NCBI GenBank assembly: GCA_973895155.1
Contig: OZ316899.1
Location: 4,157,241-4,221,240 of the forward strand
Length of the DNA stretch: 64,000 nt
Reading direction: 5' to 3'
From: Marsupella aquatica
Lineage: Eukaryota > Plantae > Marchantiophyta
Both the position numbers and the translations under genes were made by a program. The notes under the pieces are model-generated. The model did not search any database, was not told where the DNA came from, and worked only from the letters and a program-made list of their open reading frames with translations. Positions 42,580-62,659 of this stretch are shown one piece after another; position 1 is the first letter of the stretch; the number at the start of each line of letters is the position of its first letter.

Positions 42580-43600
42580 TGGTATCGCTCGTGGAATAAT
42601 GACCTAATGTTTGTACGTGAATGAGCCCTTTCTTAGTTGCAGCGATAAACTTATTGATGTTGCATTGCAAGTGACTTGTCCTTGTGTTGTGTTGTTCAAG
42701 GTTGAATCTGCATTTCCGCTATTGTTGTTTTTTGTTCTGTGGTTTGTCAGAGTGATAAATTTATCACTCCTTGCATTGAGATTTGCAGACTTTGTCATCA
42801 AGGGTTCTAGTGGAAAGAGTGGATCTGCCAAGGCTGAAAGTCTCATGACAAGCCTCACAAACGCAATTTGGACAAGTGAAGACATTTGTGATGAGGTCAA
42901 GTTCATCAAAAAACCATGGTACTTTTGGGACACCAGGTTACAGTCCAAGGATATGGCAAACTGTGAGTCTCCTATCCTTTGGGTCCAAATGCAAAAATCC
43001 GCAAAGGTTACTCTCTCATTTGGCCCGGTTGTTGGTGTGGCAATCCGTGAGTACTTGATTAGCCAGGGAGACTGAGGCAAAAGTGTTGAAAGAGGGCTTG
43101 AGTTTCTTGGCAATGTGCGGACGCAAGGGATTCACCTCTGTCATTGTTACCATGGAGAACTTTCTTGAGAAATCCCTTGAGCGTTACCCAGAAGACCCGC
43201 TCGTCGCGAAAGTTTGGAAAGCAAAAGTAATGAATCTTATGGGCCTGGTTGGGTGTGCCAGTTTGTCCAAGATTGTAATCTCATCATGCTACCAAGGGTG
43301 AACACAGAGTACAAGAGGCTCACTGGTGAAGAATTCAGACCCATCCAGAAAATAGTCATTAAGAGGCCTGGTTCAAACGGGAGTGGTGCTTTGTTGGCAA
43401 AAAGTGTTGGAGGAACTACTATGGACGAGCACGCAAGCTATCTACGGAAGGGAAGTGGGAGGGGGAAAGGAAGAGGAAGAGGGAGCACCAAGGGAGATGC
43501 CACTGGTCCTTCCAAGGACGGGAGAAGGAGCCAGGGGACCGGTGTTAGCGGAGGGGGAGGAAGGGGCAGCGACAATTGTCGAGGTCGTGCAGGTTTAGGT
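42580..43600 (+). repeat. ~1 kb coding module, copy 1 (direct repeat of 54235-55233)
   Basis: Colinear DNA and protein similarity (SLTNAIWTSEDIC...EYKRLTGEEFRPIQKIVIKRPG...GRGKGRGRG). Confidence 0.88.
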
Positions 43601-43813
43601 GCTCATTTTTGTTTTGGGCTTTGTTTGCGATAATTTTATCAGAATTGGTGTAATAGCTGTCTAAATTAGAAACTTAGAAATAATGAAAAAAATTTAAAAT
43701 TTTGTAGTTAGAAATAGATTAAACATAGCCAATTAATCTACTTTTAGATATAAGTAAAGTTAAGACTTAAGTTAGGCAGATTAGTGGATAATACCCTGAG
43801 TTATTAAGTAGGG

Positions 43814-46682
43814 GTGAGACAAGCCAGAAGAAACTACTATCGATGTTTTCGAAGCACGGAAGGAAGATTGGTGCTTCCAAGTTTGACGGTGCGTTACAAA
43901 GAGCATTTTGGCGTAAAAGCACAACGGCGCTTTGGAGCAAAAGCGCAACGGCGTTTCGGGGGAAAAGCGCAACCGCACAACAGCATTTCGGAGCAAAGGC
44001 GTAAGGGCGCAACAGAGCGAAAGCGCAACGGTGGATCACTTGGCATTGATCTCTTCGGATTGATAGTTGGTGACAACGCCTTGTTCCTTGTTACTATGGT
44101 AGACAAAGGGGGAGAGATGACTGCGAGAAGAGTTCCCTTACCTAAGGCCGTCCCTGTGACATACCCTACGATGGAAAGAAACTTGCACGTTTTGAAGAAA
44201 GCACTGGCGGTCATGCACCTGAGTAAATTGCTCACTCTGCCTTGGTCCGTAACTTCATTAAGTTTCCTAAAGGATTTCAGTGATGGGGCACGAATCGAAG
44301 TTGGTATGGTGGGAACTGCTCGGGCAAATCCAGAATTCTGGACTCTGCAATTTGTTGTTGATGCTTTCGGCTGTCCCGCCGAAGGTGACAGCCTTCACTC
44401 ACGACAAGGAGAGACTGCGAGGCCTTATTTTTCTGGAACTCAAAACGTTTGCCATGGATGGAAATGGACCAGTGCACCGATTATACTCTTAAAATCATTT
44501 TAGAGCTTTTGATTCCAATTCTCCATCCCATTCGGCCACATATGATACCTGTGTCACTTGCCAATACTATTGTGGCAAGTTGGAAGGGAGTTGCTCAGAT
44601 AAATTGGGCCTTGTTGCTAAGACAAGTTATTTTATCTCAAGTAAAGAAGGTGAAAATGGATGAGTTCACTACTCTCCCTGCTTGTCTTTGCCAGTTATAC
44701 TTTCATGGGAATTGCTTACTTCCAGGCCAACAAGAGGAGCGGATCAGACTGCTTGATGAATTTGATCTTAGTGAATCAGGACAAGAGGATACTGAAGGAG
44801 AAGATGCTGATGAAGTTGAACCAGAGTTTACTCCTCTTACCAGGGAGAACCACTTGTGGAACCCAGAAGTACCTCTTCACCAATTCCTGATAACCCTCTA
44901 TCCCCTTTTGAAGATCTCAATCAGGATAGAAGACTTTACACCCCCCTCAATTCCAATCTCGATGAGTATACATCCAAACTAGAGGTTCCCCCACCGCCTG
45001 TACCTGTAGTTGACATCTCTGTCCCTATTACTCTTTGCTCACCTACAGTCCCAACTCAAAATTTATCTGTAGACAGCTTGACCCCTTCTATGAGATCCCG
45101 CAAGAGACCCTTCATGTTCAGCAAACCAATGGCTGATGAACTGAGAGTAGAATCTAATCAGCAAATTATTGATAAGTTAAGCAACTTATTGATCTGTGAA
45201 CCTGAGGAGATAGTTGACTATGTTGAGAGGTTAAGAGCAGCCTCTGCGACTCTGCCTGAACCTAGTAGTCCCGACTCTCCATACTCTCCAACCCAAGGTC
45301 CTACTCAGTTCTATCCTGAGGTGATGGAGCTATTTCAACCCACCTCCAATATTAGGGTTACAAATATTACTGAAGCTGAACCAATGGAGGAAAATGATGC
45401 ATCACCCAGGTTAGAGCTTCAACAGACACTATCTGCCTCCCCAGGTCATTCTGCTGAACACTATTCTACTCTTGTCAATAAAATGACTGACATGTTGGAG
45501 TGTGATGAGAGACACTTAATTGATGTCTTAGATGATCTTTTGCATAAGACATCAGCTTTACTTACCCGAGATCATCATCGAGAATATTGTGAGGATTTAG
45601 TCCACGGGCTTACACAGATTTTCGGATGCAACTCCAAGCAAGTCTATTATGCTGTCCGTTATCATACCTCAGCATCTGGCTCTCCCATTTACTATTCTAC
45701 CCCTCCTTCTAGTCATTCACCCCCCTCTTCTTACAGTCCTTCAAATCAACCAGACCAGCTCTACCCTAGTTTTCCAAAACCTGAGATCACACCTACAGGT
45801 GAACATCTTGCCATTTCCTATTCTGACATCCTTCCACCAGGTCAAGATAAATCCTGCCAAGTCCATTTCATTCCTACACTCCATATTGACCCTTAAACCC
45901 CTCAGGAGAATATTACACAATTTGCTGAGTTTGTCAGAGTTTCAGACCTTAGAACTCCTCCCATTTTAGAGTTTTGGCAATACTATCATAAGAAGAGAGT
46001 TGAATGTCTCTATATCCTGAAGCTTCATCTGAAGGATGTCACCCGCCTAGAGATAGTAGAGATGGATGAGATCTGGACAGAGGCTAAATATTTTTGCCCT
46101 ATTCTTGCTGTCATAATCCTAGTTGGACACATTGTACTGGAGAATGGAGATCTGGCCCTGGCATACTTTGGGAATTTACGTGCCTATGTCTTGGAATTCA
46201 TCATCAACTTTTTGAGACAAACCAACAAACGATATCAGGTCGACCATGGTGTCCTACCAGAGGAACCTTTTATTGTTCAACAATTTATCTCACCAATTGC
46301 TGAGAGTCAGAGAATCTGGAACAACATCACTTCCCAACGGTTGGCTGATTACACCCTGAAGTGGCGGGAACTCTTACCTAGTGTCACCCCACTTCTATCA
46401 CTTGCCAAGGACTCTAACACCTTCATCAACAAGTTTCCACGCAACTACCACACCACTTGTTGTAGTTATGATCTGGTCGGCATCTATATGCAAGCTAGCA
46501 AGGTGAACACTATGTTTCTTAGGAGACTACTCCCCATTCTAAATGCTGAACGACAAATCAGGTCTCTTCCATTTGCTCGACATGATATGCAGGTTATGGA
46601 TTTCCTTCAAGAGGTGATTCGAACTGAGACATTCAAGAGTTTTCAACAACCGGACCAGTTAGCACTACTTCAGGAGGATTGA
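43814..46682 (+). pseudogene. TE accessory ORF block (plant-mobile-domain/Transposase_32-like, S/P-rich ORF, unknown ORF)
   Basis: Long ORFs 43814-44503, 44449-44982, 44856-45896 and 46062-46682. The LLTLPW...DF...WTL..VVDAFG pattern is followed by an acidic linker. Confidence 0.45.
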
Positions 46683-47198
46683 CCTATTCCATCCTTCGAG
46701 TCAGGATTAGTCAATCTCCACCATTTTTGTTAAATAGTTATCATAGTTAGAAAAGTCTCATACTTTTCCAGGAGGTAGCTCTTATCTAGCAGACCATACC
46801 CTGAAAGTATCAACTTAAACCGACATGTAGTTTAGAAGTTATAGCATTTTTAATTTTTCTTAAGCGTGATTGCGCAAAGGCACAACGGCGCTACGATGCC
46901 AAAGCACAAAGGCGCTTCCGACACTTAGAAAATTTTCCGGAACAGTGTATTTTTTATCCAACAGCACTTTTCACCTATTTTATTAAGGCACTTAGACACC
47001 TGAAAAGTCTGAAATTTTGCCAGCATGTAGCATGTATGTAAACCTTCCGCCTGGAAAAGTTTCACCCTATTATGACCTTTATGTTAGAAATTAAAATGCC
47101 AATAAACTCACTATTTATTAGTTTTGTCACAAAAATGCAAAAACACTTTCAATCCAGTTTACACTAGGGATAACTTTTGGTTAGTTTTTCATTCCAAG

Positions 47199-50100
47199 TG
47201 TTGTGAGACAAGGTTTTTGATCATAATAATAGATCACTCACTCCATTAAGGTATGGCTTTATATAGCCATTGGGTTACATCATATAAGGTTAAAGGTAAC
47301 CTTATTCTAGGGTTAAAGAGTAAACTATGGTTTACAACACTCCCCCTTGGTTAGTTTATGGGTGTGTAAAGTAACCACTGTTTTAACCCTAGATTATCTA
47401 ATTGGTATTCCCATTGATGTAGCCTCATTAAAACCTTGTCGCTTTCTTCTCAAGGAGAGAGTACTACCATCATTACATATTGGGATCCAATTGGTCCATT
47501 TTGGATATCATATTTGTATTTTGTCTAAAAATATGTTTCCTATGAATGTGTATGTTCATTCATTCTATAGATTTGTTATACTATGGGTATTTATAATTTT
47601 CCTATACTATCCGATGGTTTGTATAATGTCGATTTTGTAGGTCTTTGTTTTATTGACGACCTAACTTAGCTGTGTGTTGTGCTTTCTCCAAGATGACTTC
47701 TTTAGGTTCGTAAGATCTTTGTCGTAAGTCGTCGGGTGGGGGAAAAGCTTGGCTTGTGAGCTCTGCATCGCTAGCATGTCCGATCGAGCTGTCAGGTGTT
47801 ATGCATCTCGATCCGCCGTGTATTTGAAGATCCTTCATTCGGGTGGATCGCCTTCGCTCTTATGTGTTAGTACGAGTCTTCTTTCGATTCATGGTGTGGC
47901 CTTCATGGTGGTGGCATGTTGAGTGTTGGCGATCTGTATCACAATAACAGTGGTGGACGAAGAAAAAAAAGGATGAAGTGAAAGTTATGAACGGGGTTGC
48001 AGTGGGGATTGCAAACCTCTAATATGAGCTGCTTTGCGCTGGTTCTTTCAGTTTCGTTCGTCAATAGTTGGATTGCTTGTGTTGGCATTTGTAGTTTATG
48101 CGCTTTTCGTTAAGGATTGTATGTCATGGCTTTCATGGAGTAATGTTGATAGCTTTTTCATACCTATGCCTGTGATGTGGTCTCGATGAGTTCCTGCAGG
48201 TAGAGGTTTTGTAAATATATCTGCCCTGTTGTCCTGTGATCGAATCCATTCTACTTGTATGTTTTTGCCTTGCTGTTCTTGGGTAAAGAAGAACTTGGGA
48301 TCGATGTGCTTTGTTCTTTCGGTTTTCATAATGCCGTTGATGATTTGGTCTATGCAGGCTTTGTTGTCCTCATATATTATTGTAGGTTCTGTTATCTTTG
48401 ACTTGCCCGTGCTGGTCCTGATGTGGTTAATGATACTTCTTAACCATAGGGCTTCTCTGCATGCCTCGTATAATGCTATGACTTCTGAATGATTCGATGA
48501 TGTGGTTGTCATCGTTTGCTTTGTGCTACGCCAGGATAATGCAGTGGTGCCTTGCAGGAAGACATAGCCCGTTTGTGATTTTGAGTCTTGGGGGTCAGAT
48601 AGGTATCCAACGCCTGTGTATCCTATGAGGTTATTGGGGCTGTCTTTTGGGAAGAAAAGGCCCAGGTCTATGGTGCCTTGGAGGTACCTGAATATCCTTT
48701 TTAGGCCATTCCAGTGGCGGATTGTTGGTTGGGCGCTGTGTCTTGCGAGGAGGCTGACTGAGAACGATATGTCTGGTTGTGTGTGGTTCGCTAGGTACAT
48801 TAGTGCGCCCACTGCAGATAGATAGGGTTTTTCCGAGCCTAATATTGGTTCGTGTTCTTGTCTGCGCCTGAACATATCTTTTTCTGGGTCAAGGGACCGG
48901 AGTTCCATTGGTGTGGAGACCGGGTGTGATAGGTGCATGTTAAACTGTTTGATAATTTTCTGTGTATATGTTGATTGGCAGATAAAGGTGCCATTGTGGA
49001 GGTGCTCGAATTGTAGTCCTAAGCAATATGTAGGTTCACCCAGGTCTTTCATTTCGAACACTCCCTTCAGAGTTCTGATGGTGTCTGTGATGATTTTGGG
49101 TGTCCCAAATAGATTCACATCGTCGACGTACAGTGCTAGTATTATGAATTCATTTTTCATTTGTTTGATGAAGATACATGGGGCAATATCGTTGTTGGTG
49201 AATCCGAGGTTGATCATCTCTGTTTTAAACTTCTTGTACCATATACGTCCGCTCTACTTAAGGCCATTTATGGAGCGTAATACTTTTATGGCTAATGTCG
49301 GTTTGCCAGGTCCTGTATTTCCAGGGGTTTTCTTATGCTTGTGTTGTGTATGTCCACTTTGCATGAGGAGCTCTTTAACCTGTTCATCAGGTATGATCTG
49401 TCGTATACCCGACTTTATATCTGGGCTCAGGTTCTGGGACGTCTCCCCCTGAGTATATTGTTTCACTCTCTGGATCAATTCGTGAGGTGCTTTCATGTAA
49501 ATTTCTGTGTCCAGAGTGCCATAAAGGTACGCAGTTACCACGTCCATTAAGTTGTTGATAAGTTTATGTTGTATGGAGAATGTAATAAGGTATCTGTATG
49601 TAATTGCGTCCATGATGGGTGAATATGTGAGGTCGTAGTCCCGGCCTGGTATCTGTGTATACCCCTTCGCCACTAGCCTTGCTCTGTATCTTATTACCTC
49701 TCCTTTCGCATTCCGTTTTCTAATGAATGTGAATCGGGATTCTGTGTAGTTGTTACCTGGTGGTGCCTGTATAAGTGGTCCAAAGATCTGTCTTTTGATA
49801 AGGGCGTCCATCTCAATGTTGATGGCCTCTTGCCATTTCGGCCAATCTGCTCTCTTTTGAGCTTCTTTCATAGTGAGTGGATCTGGTGTGTCACTTTCTA
49901 TTTCTTGTACAATATGATATACAAACTGTTCGTTTATTTCTGTTGTCTGTCATTTTTATATTTGTCCAGTGTTTTTATATTGAATCGAGATTTCTTTGTT
50001 ACCTGAGTTTTGGGTGTTTATGGGTTCCGAGTGTATCGTACTTAATGTTGTGACAGGGATCGTAGCCGGGGTTTTCCTTTGTCGTGGGTGGATGTCTTTT

Positions 50101-53100
50101 GCTCCTGGTGGTCTTCCCCGTTTTGCTCTTGGTGCTGTTTTGGAGGCGGGGGTCTTGGAGATCTGCACTTGTGCGGGTATGTTTGCTGCTTCTACATGTG
50201 ACCTTGTCACGTTTGCCGCGCCATTGAATGAGTCGGGAATTTTCTCTAGCATCTCATTGAGGTGGAGGATTTGTCTGACTTCTTCATCTGCTCTCTTGGT
50301 TCTTGGATCTTGGTTAATGAGGTTTGGGTTATTCCAATTAAGGTTCTGGTGGATCTGATCGTGTAATGTTGCTTTTGTCGATAGTGTGGGAATTGGTCTT
50401 CATAGAAATGGCAGTCTTGGTGTCGAGCTTTGAATAAATTTGATGTGGTAGGTTTGAGGTATCGGATGATGGATGTGGAGTCAAATCCTACGTATATGCC
50501 TGGGTGTCGTTGGGGTCCTATTTTTGTCCTTTTAGGTCCTAAGATGGGGACCATAACTTTGCATCCGAATATTCGTAAGTGTGATAAGTCTGGTGGCGTT
50601 CCTAATGCTAAGTGATATGGGGTCTTCGAGTTATATGCGGACGGTCGATATTTGAGTAGAGTTGATGCATGGAGGATAGCATGTCCCCAGGCTGATAGTG
50701 GTAAGTTTGAGTGCATTAACATTGGTCTTGCCACCATTTGGAGTCTTTTAATAACTGATTCGGCTATGCCATTTTGGAAGTGTACATGTGGGACTGAGTA
50801 CTGGGTATCTATTCCAGCTGTCCAACAGAAGTCGCCGAAGGCTTTAGAAGTGAATTCTCCTGCTCCATCTACTCGTAGTATACGTGTGGGGTGCTCAGGG
50901 AACTGAGCTTTTAATTTTAAAATGTGGGCCAATATTCTTGCAAATACCAAGTTGCATGTTGAGAGTAGGGAGATCTGTGACCATTTGGTTGAAGAGTCGA
51001 TGAGTACTAGGAAGTACTTGAATGGGCCACTAGGAGGGTCAATAGGTCTGCAGATATCCGCATTAAGTTGTTCTAAGAAGTTGGGGATTTTATATTCGGT
51101 TTTTGGTATCGATGGGCATGTTATCATTTTGCCTTGTGAGCAGGCCATACATTGTGTCTTCCTGGAGTTGGGTTTGGCCATCTTGGGGATTCCTGTGGAG
51201 TCTCTAATAATTCTGTTGTACATGTTAGTTCCAGGGTGACCGAGCCTGCAATGCCAGGTATGTGTTATGTCTGTTGTGTCTTGTTCGAGGTGGTATGCTT
51301 GGATATGAGCTGCATATAGGCCAGGTGGTATTAAGGGTAATATCTCCATAATTTGTGGTATGCCTACCGTTTCTTGGAGTATTTGCAGGGTTTCGGTTTC
51401 ACCATGTTTTTCTGTTCTCAATTGGTATTGGTTCGCGCGTATGTCTTGAAAGCTGATTAGGTTTCGTGTAGCTGTTGGGGCATATATTGCAGCTGCTATA
51501 TTTATTTTGGTTCCTCCAGGGAGTATAATTGTTGCTTTGCCTTTGCCTTCTTTGATTTGATTGGGTCCGGCGATTGTTGTTAGAGTTCTGGAGGATGGGG
51601 TGATATATTCAAAGTATTTATTATGTTTTAGTATTGTATGTGAGGTTCCGCTGTCGATGATGCCTATATTGGGGTCATTAAGTGGTGGGTGCTGCAGGTT
51701 TGGTGTAGCTGTATGTGTTTCTATTTGCACTTCAGTTTCGTTGTATGCTGCGATATCCTCTTCGATTTCCATGTAGTTGCCTTGTGGATTTTGTCTCGTT
51801 TGGTTTCTTTCATTAGTATATCGTTGTGCCTCCTGGTCTGATGCTTTGCAGTCTTTCCTAATGTGGCCTATCTTGCCACATCTGTAACATAGTTTTTGAT
51901 GGTTACTTGTGGTCTTGTTTTGGAGGTTTCGCCATCTGCCACTGCCTATGTTCGGTCCGCGTGTCCATATGTTTCGAGGTGGTAGGGACGTACGAGTGCT
52001 CGAGGGGTGGTATCGTCCTTGTCCCTGACTTTTCCTCTTCCTCCCCTAAATGTTGTTTGGCCTCCATTGTTTCCTCGTCTTCCGTCGTTATAGCTGCCAT
52101 AATTTGCTTCTGGCCGATGGGGTGGTGGATCAGATCCTGCAGGTCTTTTTCTTGCATTATGAAGTGCTACTATTTGTTGTTTCTCTTCAACTAATAAGTG
52201 GGCTATAAGGTCCAAATAAGTCATACAATTCATATTTCGATATTGGGTTCCCAGTGCTATGTTGGCTTCTGGGAATGTTGACAATGTTTTGTCAATTCGG
52301 TTGTTATCGTTTACTGGATGGCCACACATTTTGAGTTGAGATGTAATTCTAAATAATGCACTGTTATAGTTTGCGATTGATGTGTGGTCCATGACTCGCA
52401 GGTTATGCCAGTCCCTTCGTGCTTCGGGGAGCCATATTTCTCTCATATGATCAAATCTTGATTTGAGTTGGTCCCATAGCTTGCGTGGGTTTACCTCATT
52501 CATATATTTATTCTTCACTTGTGGTGATAGGTGTTGTCTCAACAGGAATGTAGCGTTAGCTTTCTGTTTCAGAGTTAGATTTGCATCTGTATATAGTGTG
52601 TCTTCCAACTCTTGGGATGCAAAATATATTTCGACGTCTGTTATCCATGTCAGATAATTGGAACGGTCGACTTTTAGTGCCGGCTAGATCAGTTTCTCGA
52701 CTGTATTCATCTTTGATTATAGGTTGGAGGTCGACTTGATGTCTTCTATAATTGTAATATCTCGCACATTATCAGTTGCGGATCGGAATTTGATTTAATT
52801 CTGTCTCAATCGTGTCTCAATCGTTTTCGATCCTGGCATTCAATTTGGGTTTCTATTGTATCTTTGATGTGCAAAAAAAGGGATAAGAAAAATTAAGACT
52901 GCTTATCTAAGGGATTGACTACTATGAGTAGACAAAAAAATCTTTGGAGTCTGCTCGGTAGGTCAAGATTTGGGTCGAATCTTGGAAGGTAATCGGGGGC
53001 TATGGCGAGTAAAAAAACGGTTGGGGCAGTTATATATTAAGAAAGTGAACCATAAAATGATGTTATCCTCGTTGAAACATTGAGTCATCTATTCTATATA

Positions 53101-53273
53101 TTTTTGTGTAGAGCATACACGTGCTGGTAACGTGTTGTGAGACAAGGTTTTTGATCATAATAATAGATCACTCACTCCATTAAGGTATGGCTTTATATAG
53201 CCATTGGGTTACATCATATAAGGTTAAAGGTAACCTTATTCTAGGGTTAAAGAGTAAACTATGGTTTACAACA
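47199..53273 (-). mobile_element. Element E: Ty1/copia, Bianca-like, disrupted pol
   Basis: Identical 141-bp TG...CA LTRs (47199-47339, 53133-53273), PPT AAGGGGGAG (47340-47348), half-tRNA-type PBS CGTTACCAGCACG (53120-53132), and imperfect TSD CCAAG/CCAGA. Confidence 0.92.
48096..52608 (-). pseudogene. Element E gag-pol in at least five pieces
   Basis: IIDSGTSHT protease, WHCRLGH, CMACSQGK, VDGAGEF, QNGIAES, ARLVAKGY, LYVDDVN, TKHIDPKFF. Confidence 0.92.
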
Positions 53274-54234
53274 CCAGAACATTCTAGTGAACCTTGAGTA
53301 CTCCTGTAACATATTTTCATACTTTTTACTTTAGTTTATGACCCTTAAGATATGAAAGGGCATGTCCTTTCATTATCTCTTTTCCCTTTAGTTCCTCCTA
53401 CCCTATATGTAGTAGACTTTATGTCACTTTTTGTGTGAAGAAATTTCATGAGCGCTCAATTGCAAGATTGCAACTTTGTTACCTCCATTTGTAGCAAGCA
53501 CTCCATTGCATATGAGTACTTAATACAAAGGAATTCTTCCCCCTTCAAGTCTAAATGAATGAGAAGTTTGGACCCTTGAAGTAAAATTATTATGATTGTT
53601 AAATCTTTTGAGTATGTGGAAATAGATTCCTTGTTGGTGAGTTTCACATATTCCTTAGTTTTTGATGCATAGTTTTTGACGTGACATTGCTTGTGCACGG
53701 GATGCAAAGATCGTTACTTACCAATTACTTATGGCTTCAAATTTGATCATGATGGTGTCTCTTATTTGTGACACAAAGTACCGATTGGATACAAAAGTGA
53801 TTGATTACTAGTCTCCACTCAGTACCTTGGAAGGAAAAGTTGAGACATGTTGACGGCATTTTAGTAATCATCCTAGTACCGTAATCCTTTCTAGAAATGT
53901 TCTTGCGGATATACCACCTAAATCATATCAAATGAAGTTATGTTGAGGAGTCACCTTGGTTGTTTCCTAACTTCCTCACCATACCTCAAGATTTTCATTG
54001 TGTTTTATTAATTGTTTCCATTTGTTAATTTTATTTACAATGTTAAGCAAACATTCAAAACTATGTCTTGCTGAGCAACCACAGTAAAAGGCTCAACCTT
54101 TGTGTTTTTGTCACCTTATTCATTCATAAGTGCTAAATCATAGAAAATCATTCCTTACATGTTCTTCCATGGGAACGAATACCGAGTTTTGGATCTTAAA
54201 TGTTTATTTATGTCCCTAGTGTGATACTACAATT

Positions 54235-55233
54235 GGTATGGCTCATGGATTGACCTAATGCTTGTATGTGAATGAGCACTTTCTGAGTTGTAGCAATAAA
54301 TTTATCGATGTTTGCATTGTGAGTGACTTGTCCTTGTGTTGTATTTCCGCTATTGGTGTTTTTTTGTTCCATGGTTTGTCAGAGTGATAAATTTATTGCT
54401 CCTTGCATTGAGATTTGCAGACTTTGTCATCATGGGTCCTAGTGGAAAGAGTGGATTTTCCGAGGCTGAAAGTTTCATGACAAGCCTCACAAACGCAATT
54501 TGGACAAGTGAAGACATTTGTGAAGAGGTCAAGTTCAAGAAACCCTGGTACTTTCGGGACGCCAGGTTACAGTCCAAGGATATGGCAGGCTGTGAGTCTC
54601 CTATCCTTTGGGTCCAAATGCAAAAATCCTCAAAGGTTACTCTCTCGTTTGGCCTGGTCGTTAGTGTGGAAATTTGTAAGTACTTGATTAGCCAGGGAGA
54701 GGCAAAAGTGTTGAAAGAGTGCCTAAGTTTCTTGACAATGTGTGGACACAAGGGATTCACCTCTGTCATTGTTACCATGGAGAACTTTCTTGAGAAATCC
54801 CTTGAGAGTTACCCAGAAGACCCGCTTGTCGCGGAAGTTAGGATAGCAAAAGTAATGAATCTTATGGTCCCAGCTTGGGTGTGCTAGTTTGTCCAAGACT
54901 GTGATCTCATCATGCTACCAAGGTGAATGCAGAGTACAAGAGGCTCACAGGTGAAGAATTCAGACCCATCCAGAAAATAGTTATTAAGAGGCCTGGTAAT
55001 CGAGAGTGGAGCTTTGTTGGCAAAAAGCGCTGGAGGTACTACTCTGGACAAGCACGCAACTGGTCTGAGGAAGGGAAGTGGAAGGGGGAAACGGAGAGGA
55101 AGAGGGAACACCAGGGTAGATACCGCTGGTCCCTCTGAGGGCAGGAGAAGGAGCCAGGGGACTGGTGTTAGTGGAGGGGGAGGAAGGGGCAGCGGCAGTC
55201 ATTGAGGTTGTGCAGCTAGTGCAAGTTTAGGTG
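54235..55233 (+). repeat. ~1 kb coding module, copy 2, directly upstream of the MTase gene
   Basis: Homologous to 42580-43600. The frame continues past one TGA to ~55430. Confidence 0.88.
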
Positions 55234-55600
55234 TTTCAGAAGCGCCTTCCATAAATGGAAGCAAGAGTAGAGGATCCAAGGGATCGGGGCCATCTGGTTC
55301 TGGAGTCAACGTTAAGAGGAAGAGAACGGGCTGGAGTATATCCATAGCCCTGGAAGGAGTGGTAGCCCCAATCAATATGGAAACTCTGGTTATTGCCGAG
55401 CACTTGCCTCATTTGGATATACAAGCCAAGGTTCCTTTCATTCAATCAATAAGTATTACCAACCTTTAATTTTCTTTTGACAAATGAGGATTCTGATAAA
55501 AATCTCGCGGTTACTTTCATTATCTAATTTTGGATGATGTTTTCTAGATTGACGAAGAGGAGGAGACTGCTCTTTTGGGTATGAGACTAACGCCATCAAA

Positions 55601-57870
55601 GTGGAGCTCAGTCTGTTGATGCAACAAAGGGTTCAAAGGACAATTGTCCTCTTACATGTCGACAATCTAATTTTTTATGAAGTTGGAGAGAAGTCAACTT
55701 TGATGAGACCAGTGGACAAATTGCATGTGGAGAATATCAAGATTCTTCTAAGGAAAACCCCCACTTCAGCGCACTGTTTGTCCTGTGTGTGGATCCGAAG
55801 GATTGTCCCACAATCCAGGACTGGGATATTCTAAAGTCCAGAGTATGGAAGTATAGAATTATTAGAGGGAATCATGGTGCTCGGGCAAAGGCCAAGTTGT
55901 ATAAATGTATGGGAAGCAGATTTATGGTGAGCTGGAAGCTTGGGTATACGCTAGACTTACCAAATCGGAGGTTGGGCTTCCAGCACAATTATGACCAGGA
56001 GTATAGGAAGAACATGACTCATATCGGCAGAGTTCGTGCGTGCCACAATATCTTTGTTGAAATTGATGTGGGATCAACCAAGGATGTTTGCGAGGCTTGT
56101 TGTTAGGAATGTATGCTGGAATACACTCCCGGCGTTTGTGACACCATGGCCAAACATGACCTAATGTTCCAGATTGCTTTCCAAACCAAGGAAATTTGGG
56201 ATCTTCAGGAGAAAATTTTCCAGATGTGGGAGAAGGGGACTGTCTTGGGACAACCCAAAACAATTGTGGCAACAACAAATGCAAAGGGAAAGGTCAAACC
56301 TTTAATGCTGAAAGAGATTAAAATGAATAAACTTGCAGGTGACCTCAATTTAAACACTTTTCGAGGTCTTCAGGATTGTCAACTAAGGAGCATGTTAAGC
56401 GTCTGTTGAATAGGGTCATTGGGAGAGTGATCACCTTGGAGCATATGCACAAGGAAGGGGAAAAGCTAGAAAACTTTCCAAGGTGAAAAAATTATTTTTG
56501 TAGATATCTGGGTAGCCCAATTGGGCAACAAAAATGTTTCCAAATGAAACGGATGTTTTGTTGTCGTGGGAACATGGGTTGAGAAGTTGAGCAAAGCGGT
56601 AAGCACCCGTCTCGCCCCAAGATTTTTATCGGCCTTGCCATTCCATTAGTAGATTTTTTGTATACCTCGTTCCATTCAAAAATCATCCCAAGATTTTTAT
56701 CGGCTTTCGTATTCGTCAAGCAATTTCATTCTAATCAGAATCGTGTGCGACCTTTGTTACAGCTGGAGATTGGGTCAAAGCAGAAAAATAAAGTTGTTCC
56801 GCTTGTCCAGTATCATTTGGTGAGGGAGGTTATTGTTCCCTCCATTGGCATCCCATATGTGTTCAAGAATTTTGTGCTTGCTACAATTGATAGGTACAAC
56901 CGGCCCCAGGCGTTAGGCTAGGACGCGGGAGAAGCTACGGAGCAGATATGGGAAAATGCTGATGGAGATTCTTTCCTTTACTATCTCCATGTTGGGGATG
57001 TTCAAATTTTGGATTCTTTTGTTGAGGCAAGACCTTACACTCTTGCCATCGCCGACACTCCGTATGGTTTTAATGCACCTGGTTTGGAGTTTGATGAAGT
57101 GTCCTTCACTGAAAAAGATGTTGTAGATATGGTAACAAGTTTTTCAAACATGATGACTGCTAAGCACTGGAGGTTTGTTGTGATCCATTCACTACAACAA
57201 AAATATGGTCAATGTTTGCGCTTGAGACTGTGTGCAACTATGGGGTTGAGTCTAGAATTTGGGAGAAGACCGACATTCATGAGCGTCCCGCCGGTGCTCA
57301 GTTGGCATGGGCTTTTGAAAACTGGTCGATTGGTTTCTACAACAAGGAAGACATCTGGAACATGAACATGTACAATTTCCAATCGGATGAGTCTTGCATC
57401 AATATCATCAAGGTTCCATGTGTAACCAAGAAGTCTGTTGATCCGTTAGGATATGTTGTGAACCCGTATCAAAAGTCTGTTGGTTTGGGTGCTTGGTTCA
57501 TTACTCATTTCTCTGAGAAAAATGACTGGGTTATAGATCTTTGCTGTGGAATTGGATCCATATTAGCTGCTACTCTTCTCAATTCTTGCTAGAGTTGTGC
57601 GGTCAATAAAAGTTCTTTGTAGATTGATTTTGTGAGAAATCGGATTATGACTCTGGAGTCAAACTAGAATTATATGAGGAAGCGCAGATTGAAGGGCAAG
57701 GCGACAAAGATCTAGAGACTCAACCACCAATTGGAGGCCAATTGGGAACATTGGGGACTTTGACTTTCACTATTGAAGTCGTGAAGGAGATCGAGGATGA
57801 AGAAGAAGCTGAAGATGAACCTCCCAGAACGCCTAATGAGGATGATCGCAATGACATGTTACTGGATTAG
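55601..57870 (+). pseudogene. ParB-like + beta-class N6-adenine/N4-cytosine DNA methyltransferase, intron-containing, disrupted
   Basis: N-terminal RPVDKLHV and YRIIRGNHGARA (ParB-like). Then HVGDVQIL, AIADTPYG (motif IV), NPYQKS, and DWVIDLCCGIGS (motif I after motif IV, i.e. beta order). Phase-0 GT-AG intron at 56599-56738. Confidence 0.82.
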
Positions 57871-57914
57871 GAAATTCTTATCTGGTTGTAGGATAGTTAG
57901 GTTAGGTTAGGTTA

Positions 57915-58165
57915 GGTAATTTATCGCAATTACGTTTGAACCCGATAAATTTATCGGACTTTGCATTCCACTCCTTTTTTTGTCACGGTGTTTTAGCTGG
58001 GGGAATGGAGTTGTCGATAAACTTGTTAGGTTGACGTTTGAACCCTAATAAACCCCGATACATTTATCGGACTTTGCATTCCACTCCCTTGTTTGTCAGG
58101 GTGTTCTAGTTGGGGAATGGAGTTGTCAATAAACTTATCGGACTTTGCATTCCACACTCTAGCTG
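57915..58165. repeat. Spacer repeats containing palindromic CCGATAAATTTATCGG
   Basis: TTATCGGACTTTGCATTCCAC occurs three times, between the convergent MTase and transposase genes. Confidence 0.85.
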
Positions 58166-58348
58166 GTTTGTCATTTCAAGAATTTCAAAACTTCTTGAAG
58201 GTTAATGGATCTCAAAAAGAAAGATAATTATAGCTTCGGAGAACAACATAGTCCCAGATGTTCACGACTGCGACCATCCTCATGGGAATAGATAACCATC
58301 ATAACTATAACCATTATAACTTAAAAACTTTTAATCTAGCTTCTACTA

Positions 58349-61186
58349 TCAACGACTAGTGTGTACGTCCATCATTGCATTTTGAATGATTTGTCTTGTT
58401 TGTACAGAGAGAGTGCTATTTGCCAATAAAGCAAAGTTATACACATAGACTGTAGTTTCTGCTAGGGATAGTTCATCCTCCAGTACTTTGTTTGACAAAG
58501 CCTCTTTCTTCAGATAATATCTGTCATCAATTGCAGACTCCTCTTCTGAATCCATTGCATACCAAGTGATTTTAATTTGCTCGGGGATGTCATTAATTTT
58601 TGTGAGAATCTCAATGACTTTTGCCATCTAGAATGGTCTCCCCTTTGGATCCTGATGGGCTGCTACACATATCATTGCATATTTAGTATTCACCTCTAGA
58701 TTCTTGAAGCCTCCAATTTCCATGACTTTTTTCCAACTTCCTGAAATACATGACTGTCCTCACACCTGCTATTTTATCAACCAAGATAGGTTCCATTTTT
58801 GCTTTCGTAGGATTGGTCGTAGGTTCTCTCTGTATGTTTATCTTGGGCCAACTCCAATCAAAACTCCACTATGCAGGTTTCAGGTGGTGTTGAATCACTT
58901 CTTTTTGTTTGTCAAAAAAACAAACCCACCATAGCCAATCTTCGTCGTCAGAGTAATTGAATCCATCTTCAACTGCTCTCCAATAGTTTTGAAGAGTCAT
59001 AAAATGATTTTGCGCCGCCCGCTTATCTTGTTCCTCAATATCATTCTCTTGATCATCATTGTCTCTTGCAACTCCCGTGGCAGACTTCAATGCCATTTGT
59101 GGTGCAACCCACATTCCAGATGTAGGAATGGACCAAACAAATTCCACGGGCTCCCCCCAATATGTTGTCATTGAAAGATGTTTGGCATGGAAGATGGGCC
59201 AAGCAGTTCCGTTTTTGAGTACTCTCATAATCCAAAATTGTTCCTGAGCACTTATGTCGTGGAGAGTACGCAAAACATGTCCATTCATATCCTTGTTATT
59301 TGCTTGATCGTTGTCAGACACAAACGTTTTGAAATTGGCAACCTCATTGACAAAAAATATTTTTGCCGCAGGATTGTAGGATTCCTCTATGATTGCAAAA
59401 AGAGTCTCCAACTTAAAAGCCTTTTGCTTGTTCAATTTTGAAGAAAACTTGCTAAACATATGATTAATTTGGTCATGAGTATGCCCAACCAACAGAAAAT
59501 CAACCTTTATTTTTTGGAAAACACCTATCTCCATCAACATGTTCAAATATGCCATAAGATATTTGTTCTTGTTTTCTTGAGCAGTGTTATCAAGCTGGAG
59601 GTAAAGCACTGGAGGGAGCGGACCTTCCCAGGTATTCAAAATATGCTGAATAACGTGGATGGTCAGGTTGCTATCATTGTGAATATTTGGATAGTTCAAA
59701 AAAACATTTGAACTCAATTGTTTGTTGAAGATCAAACAACCCACTATGTGTATAGGGATGAAATACTTCTCATCCATGTTCTTTGGACACCAAATAAAAT
59801 GAGGTAACTCTATCTTCTTTTGATCCATGCCATCAATACAGATGCCCTAATATTTTTCAAGACTCTTGCAACATTTTCTCCGGTGCTTTGCTCCTCTCCA
59901 CTACTTGTGCCTTCCAATGCTCGTTTAGCAATGTTGAGAATTTTCCTACAATAATAAAAATGTTCAAAACTTTGTTGGCCTGACAACGATAAATTTATCG
60001 GGTTCAATATTCAAACACTTGATTCAATCACCGTAATGTTAAACCGTGACAACGATAAATTTATCGGGATAAGTATTCAAACTGTTCAAACAATATATTC
60101 ACACACAATTACCAAAGAAGAAGCATTTGAATCCTCAACCCGATAAAATTATTGGGAGTAACACACGGGTTTAGAAACTTACTCTTTTCTGCTTTGGGTG
60201 TTGCTTTATCATGAAGTGCTTTGAATTCAATATAGGGCGCAGATGGAGAAATGACTCCTTTTGGGGGGATGCGCATGCAAGGAAACTCCTTGTTCCAAAT
60301 GCAAACAGACCACAAATATGTCACACCTTGTTCTTGGCGCATGAGAGTTTTTGACTATAAGACATCAAAACATTCTATTTTTGTCCAATTGTCAAGTAAA
60401 TAAAAATATCCTTGTTGGGGAGACTCTTAACATTTGTGGTAAAAAATTCATCTAGCCACTGAACTAGACCAAGATGTGCGGTCAATTTTTCTCTACAAAA
60501 TATATCGATCTGTATCCAAGAAAACATGTTTTTTGAGATTTTTGGAGATGATTATTTCCAAGGGAAAATAATTTCTTAAAGCCACTCCAACAAAAGGTCT
60601 TCCACTAACTGAGTAACCACTTGCACCGACATGCCCACCCTTCACACATCCTCTTAGAAGTACGTTCTTCACCTGGTAGGACAGTTCCTCACATCCTAGA
60701 GACCCAAATTCCTCAGACATAAATGATCACAATAGGGATACTTAAAAATTTCTTTCATTTTGTTTCTATTCAATTTATCATTTATCACATTGTCTTTCCT
60801 AGTAATTCGATCTCTATCTTGTTTACTGGGCTCATTTGACTTCTCTCTAGCCTAAAATCCAATGAGGTCATTGGCATTTTTGGGTCCTTCAGGTAGCTTG
60901 CGAATAGATGCATCATTCTCTGCTGAGCTACCATCCTCCACCTTGACGCATTTAGAAGGGCACTGAAAAGGTGACTAAAACTATTCTCTTCTACATCTCC
61001 TAAACATTCAGACATAACTTGTGCTATTATATCGGATTCTCTATCTCCTTCCTGATCTTTGTCCTTTGATTGACTCAACTCATCTGAAAACACAATTGGA
61101 CTCCTTGGATCTCTATACATAACCCAAACGCCACTAAGACCTAGACTCCTTGACACTTGAAGCCTGGAACCAATCACAATCCACAC
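58349..61186 (-). pseudogene. DDE transposase, DUF7869/Sola-type, multi-exon, disrupted
   Basis: IDGMDQKK.ELPHF, LYLQLDNTAQENKN, FLLVGHTHDQINHMFS, and upstream W..EFP..RIP. The superfamily name is inferred. Confidence 0.7.
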
Positions 61187-61195
61187 TAGAGAACT

Positions 61196-62659
61196 AGTCG
61201 TTGAACTCGACTACCTTAACACTTAGCTCCGGCGTCGCTGACTCCGACGCCGAGCTCCCTTATGGTCCAGGCCCGGATAGGCCATCCAAGGAGGACTTAG
61301 CATGGGGAGACTTGTAGGCAATAATACGTGGCACTAGCGAGTCAAGGAGCCAAGCTGAGGACAAACACTAAGGACTTGGACTAGCTGATAGCTGGTCGGG
61401 TCAAGGGGAAATTGGCCGGGCTCAAGGATGGCCGTCCGGACCTCCGGATGGACTTTGAGTTCTGAGGGCTGCAGTGTGAGCTCCTCTTGGGCCCAAGGTC
61501 AATGAAGTTGACGCCATGGGCAACGGACGCTTGGGGCGCAAGTTATGGCACGATCCGGGTTGGGCCGGTCGGGGCCCCAAGCAGCGATGAGACCTAAGGG
61601 CCTAGGCATGAGTACTGGGTGGGCCCGATCACAATGGGCTAAGGCACTCTGCTTGCGGATGCCTAACGAGAAAGTTATGAGCGTTGCCAATTGGTGGCGC
61701 GCCCATTATGCGCGATAGAATCCGGGTTGGGGGCCAAATGTTTAGAGACCAAAGCTGGTTCGGGGGTGGCAGGTCTCCAGAAGCATATATGAGAGGAGTG
61801 GTGTCTCCCTGGGGGCTAAGGGCGAGCCGAAGTCGTGAGCCGCGGCGGTCGCGACACTAAAGGAAACCGCCAAACAGAAACGGCAATATCTTCCCAATGG
61901 GAAGTGCGTTGGAGGACTTCTTGGGTGAGTTGGAAAGCCCTCCTGAGCTCAGCTGGGTCTGGGGCACCTTGGGTTCTTGGAGTTTGTGGGTGTTAACTCA
62001 CCCGCTTGCCCAATCCTGTCGAACAGCAGCCAAGCCGCGTTTAGTCTCCCAAGGGAGCTTGCGTTGGGGAGGCAAGGCCAAGTAGGTATGGAGGTTGAGT
62101 TCCAAGTGTGCTAGGTCCCTAGACCGTCAGTGGGGCAAGTTGGGAGTTGGTTGTACAAGGCGGGGCCATTCTGGTCTCGACGTGCTGGGACAAGCTTTAG
62201 GACAAGCTACGCTATTTGGGCCATGAGCATGTCTTGGGGTCAGGGCGGTCAGTTGGTGATGGATAGGTACGAGGGGGAACCCGGGCCGCGCCCAAGGAAG
62301 GAGTTGTTCTAGACAAACAGTGGGCGTGGGTTTTGGTTCCGGCTTATGGCATCGGGAGGACCTATTGCTGACCTATTTACCAATGTCTGTTGAGCTTGAG
62401 TTGGGATGCTAGACTTGGCAAGTTCTAGATCCTGAGGGGTTACTTACCGAGGTGCTTGGTTGCTTGTGCAGACAGTGAGGACTGTTGAGTAGCGCTCATG
62501 TAGGTGAGCAAGTGCGGCTTTGTATGGGAGGGGCCGCTGGTAGTGCAAGGGGCACTAGGGAGCTTGCTCAAGATATTCTGTGGAGGCATTCGGGCACCAG
62601 GGTCACTTAGGTGTGAGTGCTGGGATTGGTGAGGGCACTGGGTGGCTTGGTCCACCATT
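61196..62659 (+). repeat. Solo family-A LTR, 1464 bp, 5-bp TSD GAACT
   Basis: GAACT|AGTCG...CCACCATT|GAACT. Confidence 0.95.

Follow-up and report, generated by a model that had tools for sequence, protein, structure and literature searches.

Within a window of 64,000 nucleotides of Marsupella aquatica DNA, the whole stretch that was analysed, the segment from approximately 54.2 to 61.1 kb is the remnant of a cut-and-paste DNA transposon, a copy that is dead and truncated at its 5' end. Taken together, the observations are probably best explained by such a copy carrying an accessory gene in which a ParB-like module is joined to a DNA methyltransferase (MTase). The core of a preliminary description of this DNA, which had proposed a transposon-borne, intron-containing gene with ParB-like and beta-class MTase parts, is borne out by the MTase profile, the ParB fold, the splice sites, and the linkage to a transposase. 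To our knowledge, transposons held to modify their own DNA are few, and mentions of ParB-MTase accessory genes have so far been brief and confined to algae. Judging from the relatives identified here, the accessory gene is of considerable age, contains introns, is closely tied to a single transposase family, and is maintained by purifying selection. Its architecture is not new, ParB-MTase transposon genes having already been reported in algae in the accessible part of an earlier account (PMC12477816); the present locus and its relatives extend the family to the streptophyte lineage, with intact, selected relatives that include members in Chara and Ginkgo and plant-type contigs.

The decayed element and its two convergent genes

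The accessory gene appears to be laid out in three exons on the strand opposite to that of the transposase gene, the two lying tail-to-tail (Table 1). The exon 1 remnant, whose homologous part spans 54459-55076 and whose ATG lies at 54432, matches the exon-1 ORF of intact relatives in both position and orientation (L006, 393-1235; L005; L034), and yielded no Pfam match. This homologue places the true start of the gene approximately 1.1 kb upstream of position 55601, where it had been put before. A candidate for intron 1 is found at 55453-55547, and the exon 2 remnant, which is 39-48% identical to exon 2 of L006, includes YRIIRGNHGARAKA at 55852-55893 and a GNHGARA box at approximately 55864-55890.

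Table 1. Coordinates of the element copy, its genes and palindromes, and a second truncated copy, in positions of the window
Feature	Position	Strand	Remarks
ParB-MTase gene remnant, whole	54432-57870	+	at least 12 frameshifts, 7 in-frame stops
Exon 1 remnant	54432-55076	+	unassigned N-terminal region, then K/R/G-rich low complexity
Exon 2 remnant	55548-56598	+	ParB/Srx-like N-domain, HTH-like helical domain, helical linker
Intron 2	56599-56762	+	164 nt; donor GTAAGC, acceptor ending in TTACAG
Exon 3 remnant	56763-57870	+	NLS-like basic stretch, beta-class N6/N4 DNA MTase domain, acidic tail
DUF7869 transposase gene	58349-60926	-	convergent with MTase gene; RNase-H-like, DDE-type
Transposase, C-terminal piece	58349-58627	-	
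Transposase, core	58869-59828	-	
Transposase, upstream exon remnants	60172-60926	-	
Two palindromes, variants of CGATAAATTTATCG	54294-54398	.	each followed by TTGCATT; just 5' of first ATG; putative promoter-proximal cis-site cluster
Three palindromes, CGATAAATTTATCG, CGATACATTTATCG, CAATAAACTTATCG	57943-58140	.	each followed by GACTTTGCATTCC; between the convergent genes
Three palindromes, two of them exact CGATAAATTTATCG	59987-60154	.	inside transposase gene, between coding-homology blocks; likely a transposase intron
Second truncated copy, 5' part	42562-43641	+	palindromes and exon 1 only; 87% identical to 54233-55215

The extent of decay was mapped by frameshift-aware alignment to an intact relative. 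Exon 1 holds one stop (54885) and two frameshifts (54923, 54993); exon 2 holds seven frameshifts (near 55580, 55765, 55908, 55969, 56373, 56468, and 56563) and three stops (56104, 56501, and 56513); and exon 3, which closes with a terminal stop codon at 57868-57870, holds three frameshift events (near 57202/57212 and 57664) and three stops (56919, 57590, and 57620). These disruptions confirm that the copy is a pseudogene, as had been supposed. The same alignment shows that the reading frame previously assigned between 55908 and 55969 departs from the homologous one; in the last 12 codons before intron 2 it supports the frame given earlier, and the alternative of frame 2, suggested by an FPNETD stretch, was rejected. 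With both the MTase and the transposase genes broken, and conserved MTase residues substituted, the window copy is dead and without functional consequence.

Intron 2 can be followed across lineages. Its donor lies at the same codon in L006, L005, and L034, in the form GTAAG, GTAAT, or GTAAC, so that with the window four lineages share it, and a YAG acceptor stands directly 5' of the conserved start of exon 3, (F/L)xK.SKRKRR, in L001, L005, L006, and L007. In L005 and L006, which are otherwise open, the reading frame breaks exactly at this intron. An intron at 56599-56738 had been described previously; the intron is real and its donor correct, but the acceptor conserved among relatives is located at 56761-56762. 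The intron also holds two degenerate copies of the element repeat (56616-56643 and 56687-56714), and L001 shares this repeat in the intron.

The core of the convergent transposase gene matches the Pfam family DUF7869 with E=2.9e-45. The window transposase is 63-71% identical to an uninterrupted 500-aa ORF of L001, its upstream parts match L010, L034, L035, and L036, and the gene is split over several frames and truncated at its 5' end, with a gypsy-LTR-like match beginning at 61138. The DUF7869 family has hundreds of members, including several annotated copies in Chara braunii, and is also represented in Cymbomonas and in many marine invertebrates; a literature search on DUF7869 and PF25273 found no account of it. 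Among 39 DUF7869 sequences D127 is invariant and D44 and D169 nearly so. A structural model (pLDDT 84) matched RNase-H-like enzymes only in a fold search, its neighbours being IstA, Mu, Tn5, Metnase (prob 0.97), Sleeping Beauty, PFV integrase (0.98), and PIWI, with E-values of merely 1.5e-3 to 4e-2; DUF7869 is thus modelled as an RNase-H-like catalytic core with three conserved acidic residues.

The pairing of the two genes extends well beyond the window. The MTase and DUF7869 genes lie tail-to-tail in all eight plant-type loci with enough flanking sequence (the window, L001, L007, L008, L010, L034, L035, and L036, from contigs that are 50-75% identical), and they are linked, in divergent orientation, in three more distant loci (L002, L004, and L038 of Chara braunii). 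The tail-to-tail arrangement with a DDE transposase that had been noted in the window thus recurs in each of these plant-type loci, and across lineages the two genes are handed down together. One could nevertheless imagine an MTase gene that belongs to the host, or that was acquired horizontally on its own, and whose transposase neighbour is there by chance, and it is of relevance to this reading that terminal inverted repeats (TIRs) enclosing both genes, target-site duplications, and element ends were sought in the window and in L034 without being found, and that no DUF7869 gene is present within 10 kb of L037, one of the two loci examined in Chara. This explanation is effectively refuted, however, by the recurrence of the same neighbour in the same orientation in eight of eight plant-type loci and its linkage in the three distant ones, by the presence of the same palindromes on the flanks of both genes, and by the multiple and frequently decayed copies of the ParB-MTase family in Chara. 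Truncation affects the window copy, which is cut on its right side by LTR-like DNA at 61138, and related contigs end inside elements; the label of a cut-and-paste transposon is given because of the transposase family and the copy number, the ends themselves not having been found.

An origin of this segment from a virus or from bacterial contamination was also considered, and was rejected in view of spliceosomal-type introns, plant-type copia/gypsy surroundings, and the multiple relatives in Chara.

Domain architecture and selection in intact relatives

In intact relatives, the protein consists of an N-terminal region, a ParB-like module, a helical linker, a basic NLS-like stretch, and a beta-class MTase, in that order. 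By tblastn, the ParB-like part is homologous to the same protein family as the MTase part. An AlphaFold model of L006 exon 2 (pLDDT 73.6), compared with solved structures by Foldseek, has as its best match ParB-CDP 6sdk (E=3.1e-5, prob 1.0), and all of its top matches are ParB, Noc, KorB, pNOB8 ParB, PadC, or sulfiredoxin. The alignment to 6sdk runs over about 290 columns and covers both the N-domain and the HTH, within a range of 280-300 columns against targets of about 200 residues, so that at the level of the predicted fold the module comprises a ParB/Srx N-domain followed by an HTH DNA-binding domain. The resemblance to ParB that had been noted in the N-terminal segment of the window gene is hence upheld by the model of L006, but not by sequence searches: the ParB-like domain gave no match to Pfam ParBc, with DUF6551 matching weakly (E=0.004) in the Ginkgo member only, and profile A3 of the region retrieved no PDB chain at E<=10. 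The equivalent of box II reads GGNHGARA in the plant clade or GGGHxREA in the Chara clade, and because the arginine pair of the canonical GERRxRA is absent, NTP-dependent clamping by this domain is doubtful.

The MTase domain is recognizable from sequence. A 128-aa piece of the window gene (57206-57589), searched against 1.84 billion proteins, matched P0001 (347 aa) with E=1.2e-56 and 70% identity, and 50 proteins in all at E<=1e-3, a level of homology that far exceeds chance. Against the Pfam profile PF01555, whose gathering cut-off is 26.7 bits, seven pieces of the window were compared, and because the gene lies in pieces the window fragment reaches only 18.2 bits (E=0.0025), under the cut-off; intact relatives exceed it (P0001, 30.5; P0015, 49.2; P0043, 54.5; P0035, 65.7 bits), and the PF01555 assignment that had been suggested as a check is upheld through them. 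The window retains DTPY (57054-57065), NPYQKS (57461-57478), and DLCCGIGS (57536-57559), as reported earlier, and the order of motif IV, QKP box, and motif I is the beta permutation, in which the target-recognition region falls between motifs IV and I; every relative, and likewise the alignment to 5hek, shows this order.

A broad alignment of the MTase family (profile A5; a narrower one, A6, served for the collection scan for relatives) found as its best solved structure 5hek, a DpnA-like adenine MTase, with E=1.5e-15 over the full length, followed by CcrM, M.MboIIA, and M.RsrI, all of these best matches being adenine-specific. The stand-alone bacterial enzymes M1.HpyAVI (5hek), CcrM (6pbd), M.MboIIA (1g60), and M.RsrI (1eg2) share with the present family the IV-to-I order, a D-P-P-Y type motif, the QKP box, and the FxGxG AdoMet loop, and differ in the first proline of DPPY, in place of which the family mostly has I, V, F, or L. 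The catalytic tetrapeptide of the class is (D/N/S)-P-P-(Y/F/W). Its first proline is kept in P0043 and P0030 only, both with DPPY; plant and charophyte members have I, V, F, or L there, and the window copy has T, together with S for the otherwise invariant P of the QKP box. Clades with an overall identity of about 30% have in common the D, second P, and Y of motif IV, the QKP box, and the GxG of motif I, and the first position of motif IV is D in every member seen, including the Ginkgo member, where the motif is DIPH. By these motifs the relatives' protein is a beta-class N6/N4 amino-DNA MTase, for which methyl transfer is predicted.

The relatives are also under selection. Exon 3 is open in nine of them, and omega lies between 0.06 and 0.13 wherever dS was measurable, in exon 2 and exon 3 alike, which reflects strong purifying selection in the intact relatives; an accessory protein maintained in this manner therefore serves the element.

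N4-cytosine MTases typically begin motif IV with S. That the family produces N4-methylcytosine rather than N6-methyladenine is improbable, considering the invariable D at that position and the adenine specificity of the best solved matches, although PF01555 spans N6-adenine and N4-cytosine enzymes, profile A5 also matches the N4-cytosine enzymes 8s9m (E=1.6e-7) and PvuII (1e-3), if more weakly, and both products are left open in the portion of the Ectocarpus account that was accessible (PMC12477816). A preference for N6-adenine, which had been proposed from the DPPY-type motif, fits both the D-x-P-Y motif and the ranking of solved-structure matches, and is a prediction from sequence.

In DIRS1 elements, a role as regulator has reportedly been proposed for an inactive MTase domain. 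That plant and charophyte members have another residue for the initial proline of DPPY, and that Ginkgo has DIPH, could likewise be explained by a domain that is catalytically dead, or directed at RNA, the protein serving only as a DNA- or RNA-binding regulator, and profile A5 does produce weak side matches to rRNA dimethyladenosine transferases (E about 4e-3). Such a role is distinctly improbable: the remaining motif residues are conserved as described, omega is about 0.1 over the MTase exon, the domain is fused to a module predicted to bind DNA through ParB and HTH folds, and full-length alignments to DNA MTases are better by many orders of magnitude than those to RNA MTases.

Lineage-specific palindromes and possible self-marking

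The non-coding segments of the element are marked by a palindrome, for which 28 strand-matches were observed in the window as compared to 1.5 expected, and the eight palindrome sites of the element all lie outside coding homology (Table 1). The block upstream of the first ATG recurs in the truncated second copy, at 42643/42753; an exact CGATAAATTTATCG occurs in the homologous 140-nt intergenic spacer of L001; and L034 has a palindrome of its own at the equivalent place in the transposase gene (6029-6077), as L004 has a repeat of its own between its two transposase ORFs. In comparisons covering four to six lineages, the palindromes measure 14-20 bp and are abundant around and inside the ParB-MTase gene, with lineage-specific cores that differ by symmetric changes: CGATACCGGTATCG in L034 and L036, CGATGTTTGGATCG in L006 and L035, and GAGCGAGAC..GTCTCGCTC in L005. 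Cores in relatives are often flanked by GAAT/ATTC, and in the distant L002 and L004, comparable places are occupied by repeated near-palindromes of unrelated sequence. Each lineage carries its own palindrome in its non-coding segments, introns included, and these are candidate parS-like sites.

ParB proteins are classic readers of palindromes of 14-16 bp. By analogy, the ParB-like module could recognize the lineage-specific palindromes in the fashion of parS, upstream of its gene, in its introns, between both genes, and in the transposase intron. Once bound, it would deliver the MTase fused to it to the DNA of the element itself. The MTase would then mark this DNA, most likely as N6-methyladenine, and the self-applied epigenetic mark could, for instance, keep the genes of the element transcribed or permit it to evade silencing by the host. 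This mechanism, taken as a whole, is plausible but somewhat more likely to fail than to hold in one or another of its steps. It is with a little more reserve still that we suggest that land-plant and charophyte genomes harbour a living DUF7869 (possibly Sola1) lineage whose ParB-MTase loads at element-specific palindromes, distributed over all introns and spacers, and coats the DNA of the element with 6mA.

The same element and proteins could also be accommodated if the palindromes were binding sites of the transposase, or promoter and terminator sites, and the ParB-MTase acted elsewhere or without them. Subterminal repeats serve as transposase-binding sites in En/Spm and Ac, and in L034 the arrays are indeed densest towards the two ends of the gene block (19-413 and 8024-8306), while the sites upstream of genes and between the convergent ones occupy promoter and terminator positions; in addition, the long N-terminal part of the transposase contains Cys-rich motifs and could bind DNA. 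Palindromes that also occupy introns of both genes, at a spacing of 1-2 kb throughout the element, would be odd as end-binding sites of a transposase, and the standing of ParB as a palindrome reader likewise argues for the self-marking mechanism. Further to this point, the inverted-repeat arrays of red-algal transposons specifically adjoin a gene with a ParB domain (bioRxiv 10.1101/2025.02.11.637652). On balance, the assignment of the palindromes to the transposase or to transcription seems unlikely, if still worth serious consideration.

Should self-marking be true, the ParB-MTase would act as an epigenetic writer that addresses itself, with a site specificity evolving in step with the lineage of its element, and would form a natural, programmable pair of 'address plus writer' in eukaryotes. 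The lineage-specific palindromes offer a concrete, testable cis-element, whether and why a eukaryotic transposon writes 6mA on itself becomes directly testable, and the outcome would bear on the disputed reports of 6mA in plant DNA.

Comparison with algal, domesticated, and phage systems

The closest described system is that of Ectocarpus, where Sola1-1_Ec32 carries an accessory gene with ParB-like and N6/N4 MTase parts, a protein that its authors liken to those encoded by transposons of green and red algae (Dinatale et al. 2025, PMC12477816, as far as the text was available). According to the same accessible text, both systems have the two domains in one protein of approximately 1000 aa, inside a DNA transposon and on the strand opposite to the transposase, and in both it is proposed that the protein binds and marks its own element; the self-marking idea and the architecture had in fact been put forward already for algal transposons (PMC12477816; bioRxiv 10.1101/2025.02.11.637652). 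Unlike Sola1-1_Ec32 as portrayed there, the present family resides in a plant-lineage host with relatives in Chara braunii and Ginkgo, its gene has introns, and every non-coding segment carries lineage-specific palindromes. Sola1 elements are recognized by a 4-bp AWWT target-site duplication and Sola1-type TIRs (PMC3845634).

Red-algal Plavaka elements (EnSpm/CACTA) resemble the present family in that their PAG2 and PAG3 are genes for DNA modification carried on a transposon, inverted-repeat arrays lie beside the gene with the ParB-like domain, and accessory genes pass from one transposon superfamily to another (Petroll et al. 2025, bioRxiv 10.1101/2025.02.11.637652). There, by contrast, the functions are divided between separate proteins, PAG2 combining an N6-adenine MTase with SET and PAG3 a ParB domain with a 2OG oxygenase, and the transposase superfamily is not the same.

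Bdelloid N4CMT and Marchantia DN4MT1 are, like the present proteins, bacterial-type amino-MTases of the same broad Pfam family in eukaryotic genomes, and the transposon gene had been proposed as a possible reservoir for them. This proposal finds no support: the catalytic motif of DN4MT1 is TSPPY, of the N4-cytosine type, in the consulted part of its description (bioRxiv 10.1101/2021.02.12.428880), as against a D first in every member of the present family, none of which has S-P-P-Y. The accessible portions of the N4CMT and DN4MT1 accounts mention neither a ParB module nor a transposon context, both of which distinguish the present family.

Fusions of ParB and N6_N4 MTase are also known from phages and prophages (bioRxiv 10.1101/2025.10.10.680097; ParB-terminase loci, Iyer et al., PMC4738411), and such fusions are likely the evolutionary source of the eukaryotic family. 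No relatives came up when viral contigs were scanned with P0043 and P0021, by a method that detects close relatives only and has little bearing on a phage origin. Both groups combine a ParB fold with PF01555 in equal order on mobile DNA. The phage and prophage proteins are prokaryotic, without introns, and much shorter, and the eukaryotic family has one more exon at its N-terminal end, a long helical linker, and a stretch resembling an NLS, and its box II is altered.

The methyltransferase and ParB-like modules

A preliminary description had placed a gene combining ParB-like and beta-class amino-DNA-methyltransferase segments at 55601-57870, and all four motifs that it named are present there when the three forward frames are taken together (see table). 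Searched against Pfam in separate pieces, the region 57206-57589 gives a sub-threshold match to PF01555 (E=0.0025, 18.2 bits). The 128-aa methyltransferase piece has only 50 relatives when scored against 1.84 billion representative proteins, the best being P0001 (E=1.2e-56, 70% identity). Full-length relatives of about 700-1000 aa, which include several Chara braunii proteins, the Ginkgo biloba model Gb_37443 and proteins from metagenome and SRA assemblies, reach the PF01555 gathering score; they display a GG(G/N)H..(E/R)A box on the N-terminal side and the succession D-x-P-Y-G ... (N/C)P(Y/C)QKP ... LD..(S/C/A)G(S/T)G on the C-terminal side, and tblastn finds homology to them in each half of the window gene. 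Compared with solved structures, a profile of 16 methyltransferase domains matches the DpnA-like adenine methyltransferase 5hek at E=1.5e-15 (positions 24-232), followed by the beta-class DNA methyltransferases CcrM, M.MboIIA and M.RsrI; N4-cytosine enzymes are weaker matches, and RNA methyltransferases appear only at about 4e-3. The scores of the relatives and of this profile thus bear out the assignment to the beta class.

Two of the relatives have unusual features. The Chara protein P0013 (GBG86584.1, 1825 aa) contains two complete ParB-methyltransferase units in tandem, the first partly missing its motif-I region, and probably represents two neighbouring element copies fused by the gene model. 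In the Ginkgo protein (P0035, 670 aa), DIPH replaces D-x-P-Y and the ParB box reads GGCNSVEA, and this member may be inactive or domesticated.

Sequence comparison did not show the ParB identity of the N-terminal module. An AlphaFold2 model of exon 2 from an intact relative (L006, 1888-2973; 24-row alignment, mean pLDDT 73.6) has only ParB-family structures as PDB neighbours, the closest being B. subtilis ParB-CDP 6sdk (E=3.1e-5, probability 1.0), followed by Noc, M. xanthus ParB and C. crescentus ParB-parS; KorB, pNOB8 ParB, PadC and sulfiredoxin also match. The alignments cover the N-domain and the HTH domain, with low TM-scores (0.2-0.35) because the domains are placed differently relative to each other, and the ParB claim can be considered settled by this comparison of predicted folds. 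The canonical arginine pair is missing from the box-II equivalent, and CTP clamping is therefore not claimed.

Gene structure, decay and selection

Open or nearly open copies on metagenome contigs (L005, L006, L034, L035 and L036) consist of three coding blocks: exon 1 (L006 393-1235), exon 2, which holds the ParB-like module and a linker, and exon 3, which holds the methyltransferase. In the window, a homologue of exon 1 spans 54459-55076, preceded by an ATG at 54432, so that the gene begins approximately 1.1 kb before the start first proposed. From its conserved location and orientation alone, we infer that exon 1 is transcribed together with exons 2 and 3. Exon 2 stops eight codons past a conserved W, at a donor that reads GTAAGC in the window, GTAAGA in L006, GTAATA in L005 and GTAACG in L034; exon 3 follows YAG and starts with (F/L)xK.SKRKRR in L001, L005, L006 and L007, and in the window it begins after ...TTACAG at 56762. 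This conservation of donor and acceptor argues well for an intron at 56599-56762; of the interval initially suggested (56599-56738), the donor was exact but the acceptor is 24 nt downstream. The basic stretch SKRKRR is conserved in these same four loci, has decayed to SKQKNK in the window (56775-56792), and, lying between ParB linker and methyltransferase domain, resembles a nuclear localisation signal.

Frameshift-aware alignment of the window gene to L006 gives 46-52% identity, with at least 12 frameshift events and 7 in-frame stops over the three exons. In the QKP box, S replaces the otherwise invariant P, motif IV is DTPY as opposed to D(I/V/F/L/P)PY in the family, and the transposase gene is also split. 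The copy is dead, as had been recognized from the outset.

Exon 3 is open in nine relatives, where dN ranges from 0.11 to 0.39 and most pairs have reached saturation at synonymous sites. Pairs with a measurable dS give omega values of 0.06-0.13, exon 2 behaving likewise, which indicates that the accessory protein has been kept by selection within the transposon lineage.

Features of the element and its surroundings in the window, and palindromic cores of related loci
Feature	Position or locus	Strand or frame	Remarks
Second, truncated copy of element 5' part	42562-43641		palindromes and exon 1 only; 87% identity to 54233-55215
YRIIRGNHGARAKA	55852-55893	forward frame	present
DTPY	57054-57065	forward frame	present
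NPYQKS	57461-57478	forward frame	present
DLCCGIGS	57536-57559	forward frame	present
DUF7869 ORF	58869-59828	convergent with methyltransferase gene	Pfam E=2.9e-45
Gypsy-LTR-like sequence	61138-61500		similar to 25143-25503, 27541-27846, 2657-2817
CGATAAATTTATCG sites in element			2 ahead of exon 1; 3 in the spacer of the convergent pair; 3 within the transposase gene
Core CGATACCGGTATCG	L034, L036		
Core CGATGTTT(G/T)GATCG	L006, L035		
Core GAGCGAGAC..GTCTCGCTC	L005		

Pairing with a DUF7869 transposase and comparison with known systems

The tail-to-tail transposase reported next to the gene belongs to the DUF7869 family, whose model (pLDDT 84) resembles RNase-H-like enzymes only, mainly transposases and integrases, with modest E-values (1.5e-3 and up); its conserved acidic residues are D44, D127 and D169. 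DUF7869 proteins have several annotated copies in Chara braunii, and are also present in Cymbomonas and many marine invertebrates. The related locus L001 is collinear with window 56760-59850 (70-74% nucleotide identity) and has the same convergent arrangement, with an uninterrupted transposase ORF of 500 codons. The tail-to-tail pair also occurs in L007, L008, L010, L034, L035 and L036, that is, in all eight plant-type loci with enough downstream sequence, the window included. In more distant clades the genes lie side by side in divergent orientation, in L002 (protein P0043), L004 (P0021) and Chara braunii L038; at the other Chara locus examined, L037, no transposase is present within 10 kb. 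On L002, CCCTAA-type telomere-like repeats (9115-9363) lie near the contig end, hinting at a subtelomeric location and at the host.

Phages and prophages commonly carry fusions of ParB with N6/N4-methyltransferases (bioRxiv 10.1101/2025.10.10.680097; PMC4738411). In Ectocarpus, the element Sola1-1_Ec32 encodes a 1104-aa protein of this type opposite its transposase (PMC12477816), and red-algal Plavaka elements carry an N6-A methyltransferase-SET gene together with a ParB-2OG-oxygenase gene that has arrays of inverted repeats beside it (bioRxiv 10.1101/2025.02.11.637652). The window locus is therefore another, decayed member of an already known type, and its novelty is modest: what is added is an occurrence within the streptophyte lineage, the intron structure, the tight DUF7869 pairing, the evidence for selection and the palindrome anatomy. 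Whether a eukaryotic transposon directs DNA methylation to itself can be approached cleanly by experiment through this family. In sum, the preliminary observation is confirmed with corrected boundaries and its interpretation supported, except for the idea of a reservoir for N4CMT and DN4MT1, which is unsupported: DN4MT1 has TSPPY (bioRxiv 10.1101/2021.02.12.428880), whereas the ParB-methyltransferase family always has D at that position.

Palindromes and surrounding sequence

With up to two mismatches, the palindrome CGATAAATTTATCG, on which the preliminary description was silent, occurs 28 times in the window, both strands counted, where 1.5 occurrences are expected by chance, and none of the shuffles reached this number. 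Eight sites lie within the element, all outside coding homology, and four more in the truncated second copy (42.5-43.6 kb); intron 2 and the candidate intron 1 hold degenerate copies. In L001 the homologous spacer retains one exact copy and intron 2, as in the window, a degenerate one. Other lineages have their own cores in similar places, often with GAAT...ATTC flanks about 8 nt away, and several core-to-core differences are symmetric, so that the palindrome is preserved. Distant elements have unrelated repeats (GCGAAAATATTTTCGC/ACA type in L002, CGTATATCGCTATCGG type in L004), located upstream or downstream of the ParB-methyltransferase gene and within or next to that for the transposase. 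The palindromes can be read as putative element-specific binding sites for a protein; ParB-type recognition is an attractive candidate, the main rival being that the transposase binds them instead.

In L010 (963-2951, minus strand), a 662-codon transposase frame runs through the lineage's palindrome (peptide ...ERDRYR...), at a position corresponding to a palindrome-bearing non-coding segment in the window and L034; this is probably an intron staying in frame by chance, and automatic gene calls on such contigs therefore over-extend. Isolated near-matches at 18681-18694, followed by a CATTC-type flank, and at 35297-35310 lie far from both copies and could be due to chance or be relics of further copies.

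The window is repeat-rich, plant-type DNA (46% G+C) with nested copia and gypsy elements that carry gag, RT-RNaseH and integrase ORFs. The 5' part of the DUF7869 gene is lost where the gypsy-LTR-like sequence starts, and the truncated second copy is followed by unrelated ORFs (43814-46682) with no match in the related loci. Near-identical direct repeats at 47195-47352 and 53129-53286 bracket copia-type gag, integrase and RT ORFs (48096-52608, minus strand), and resemble LTRs of a copia element that inserted recently between the two element fragments.
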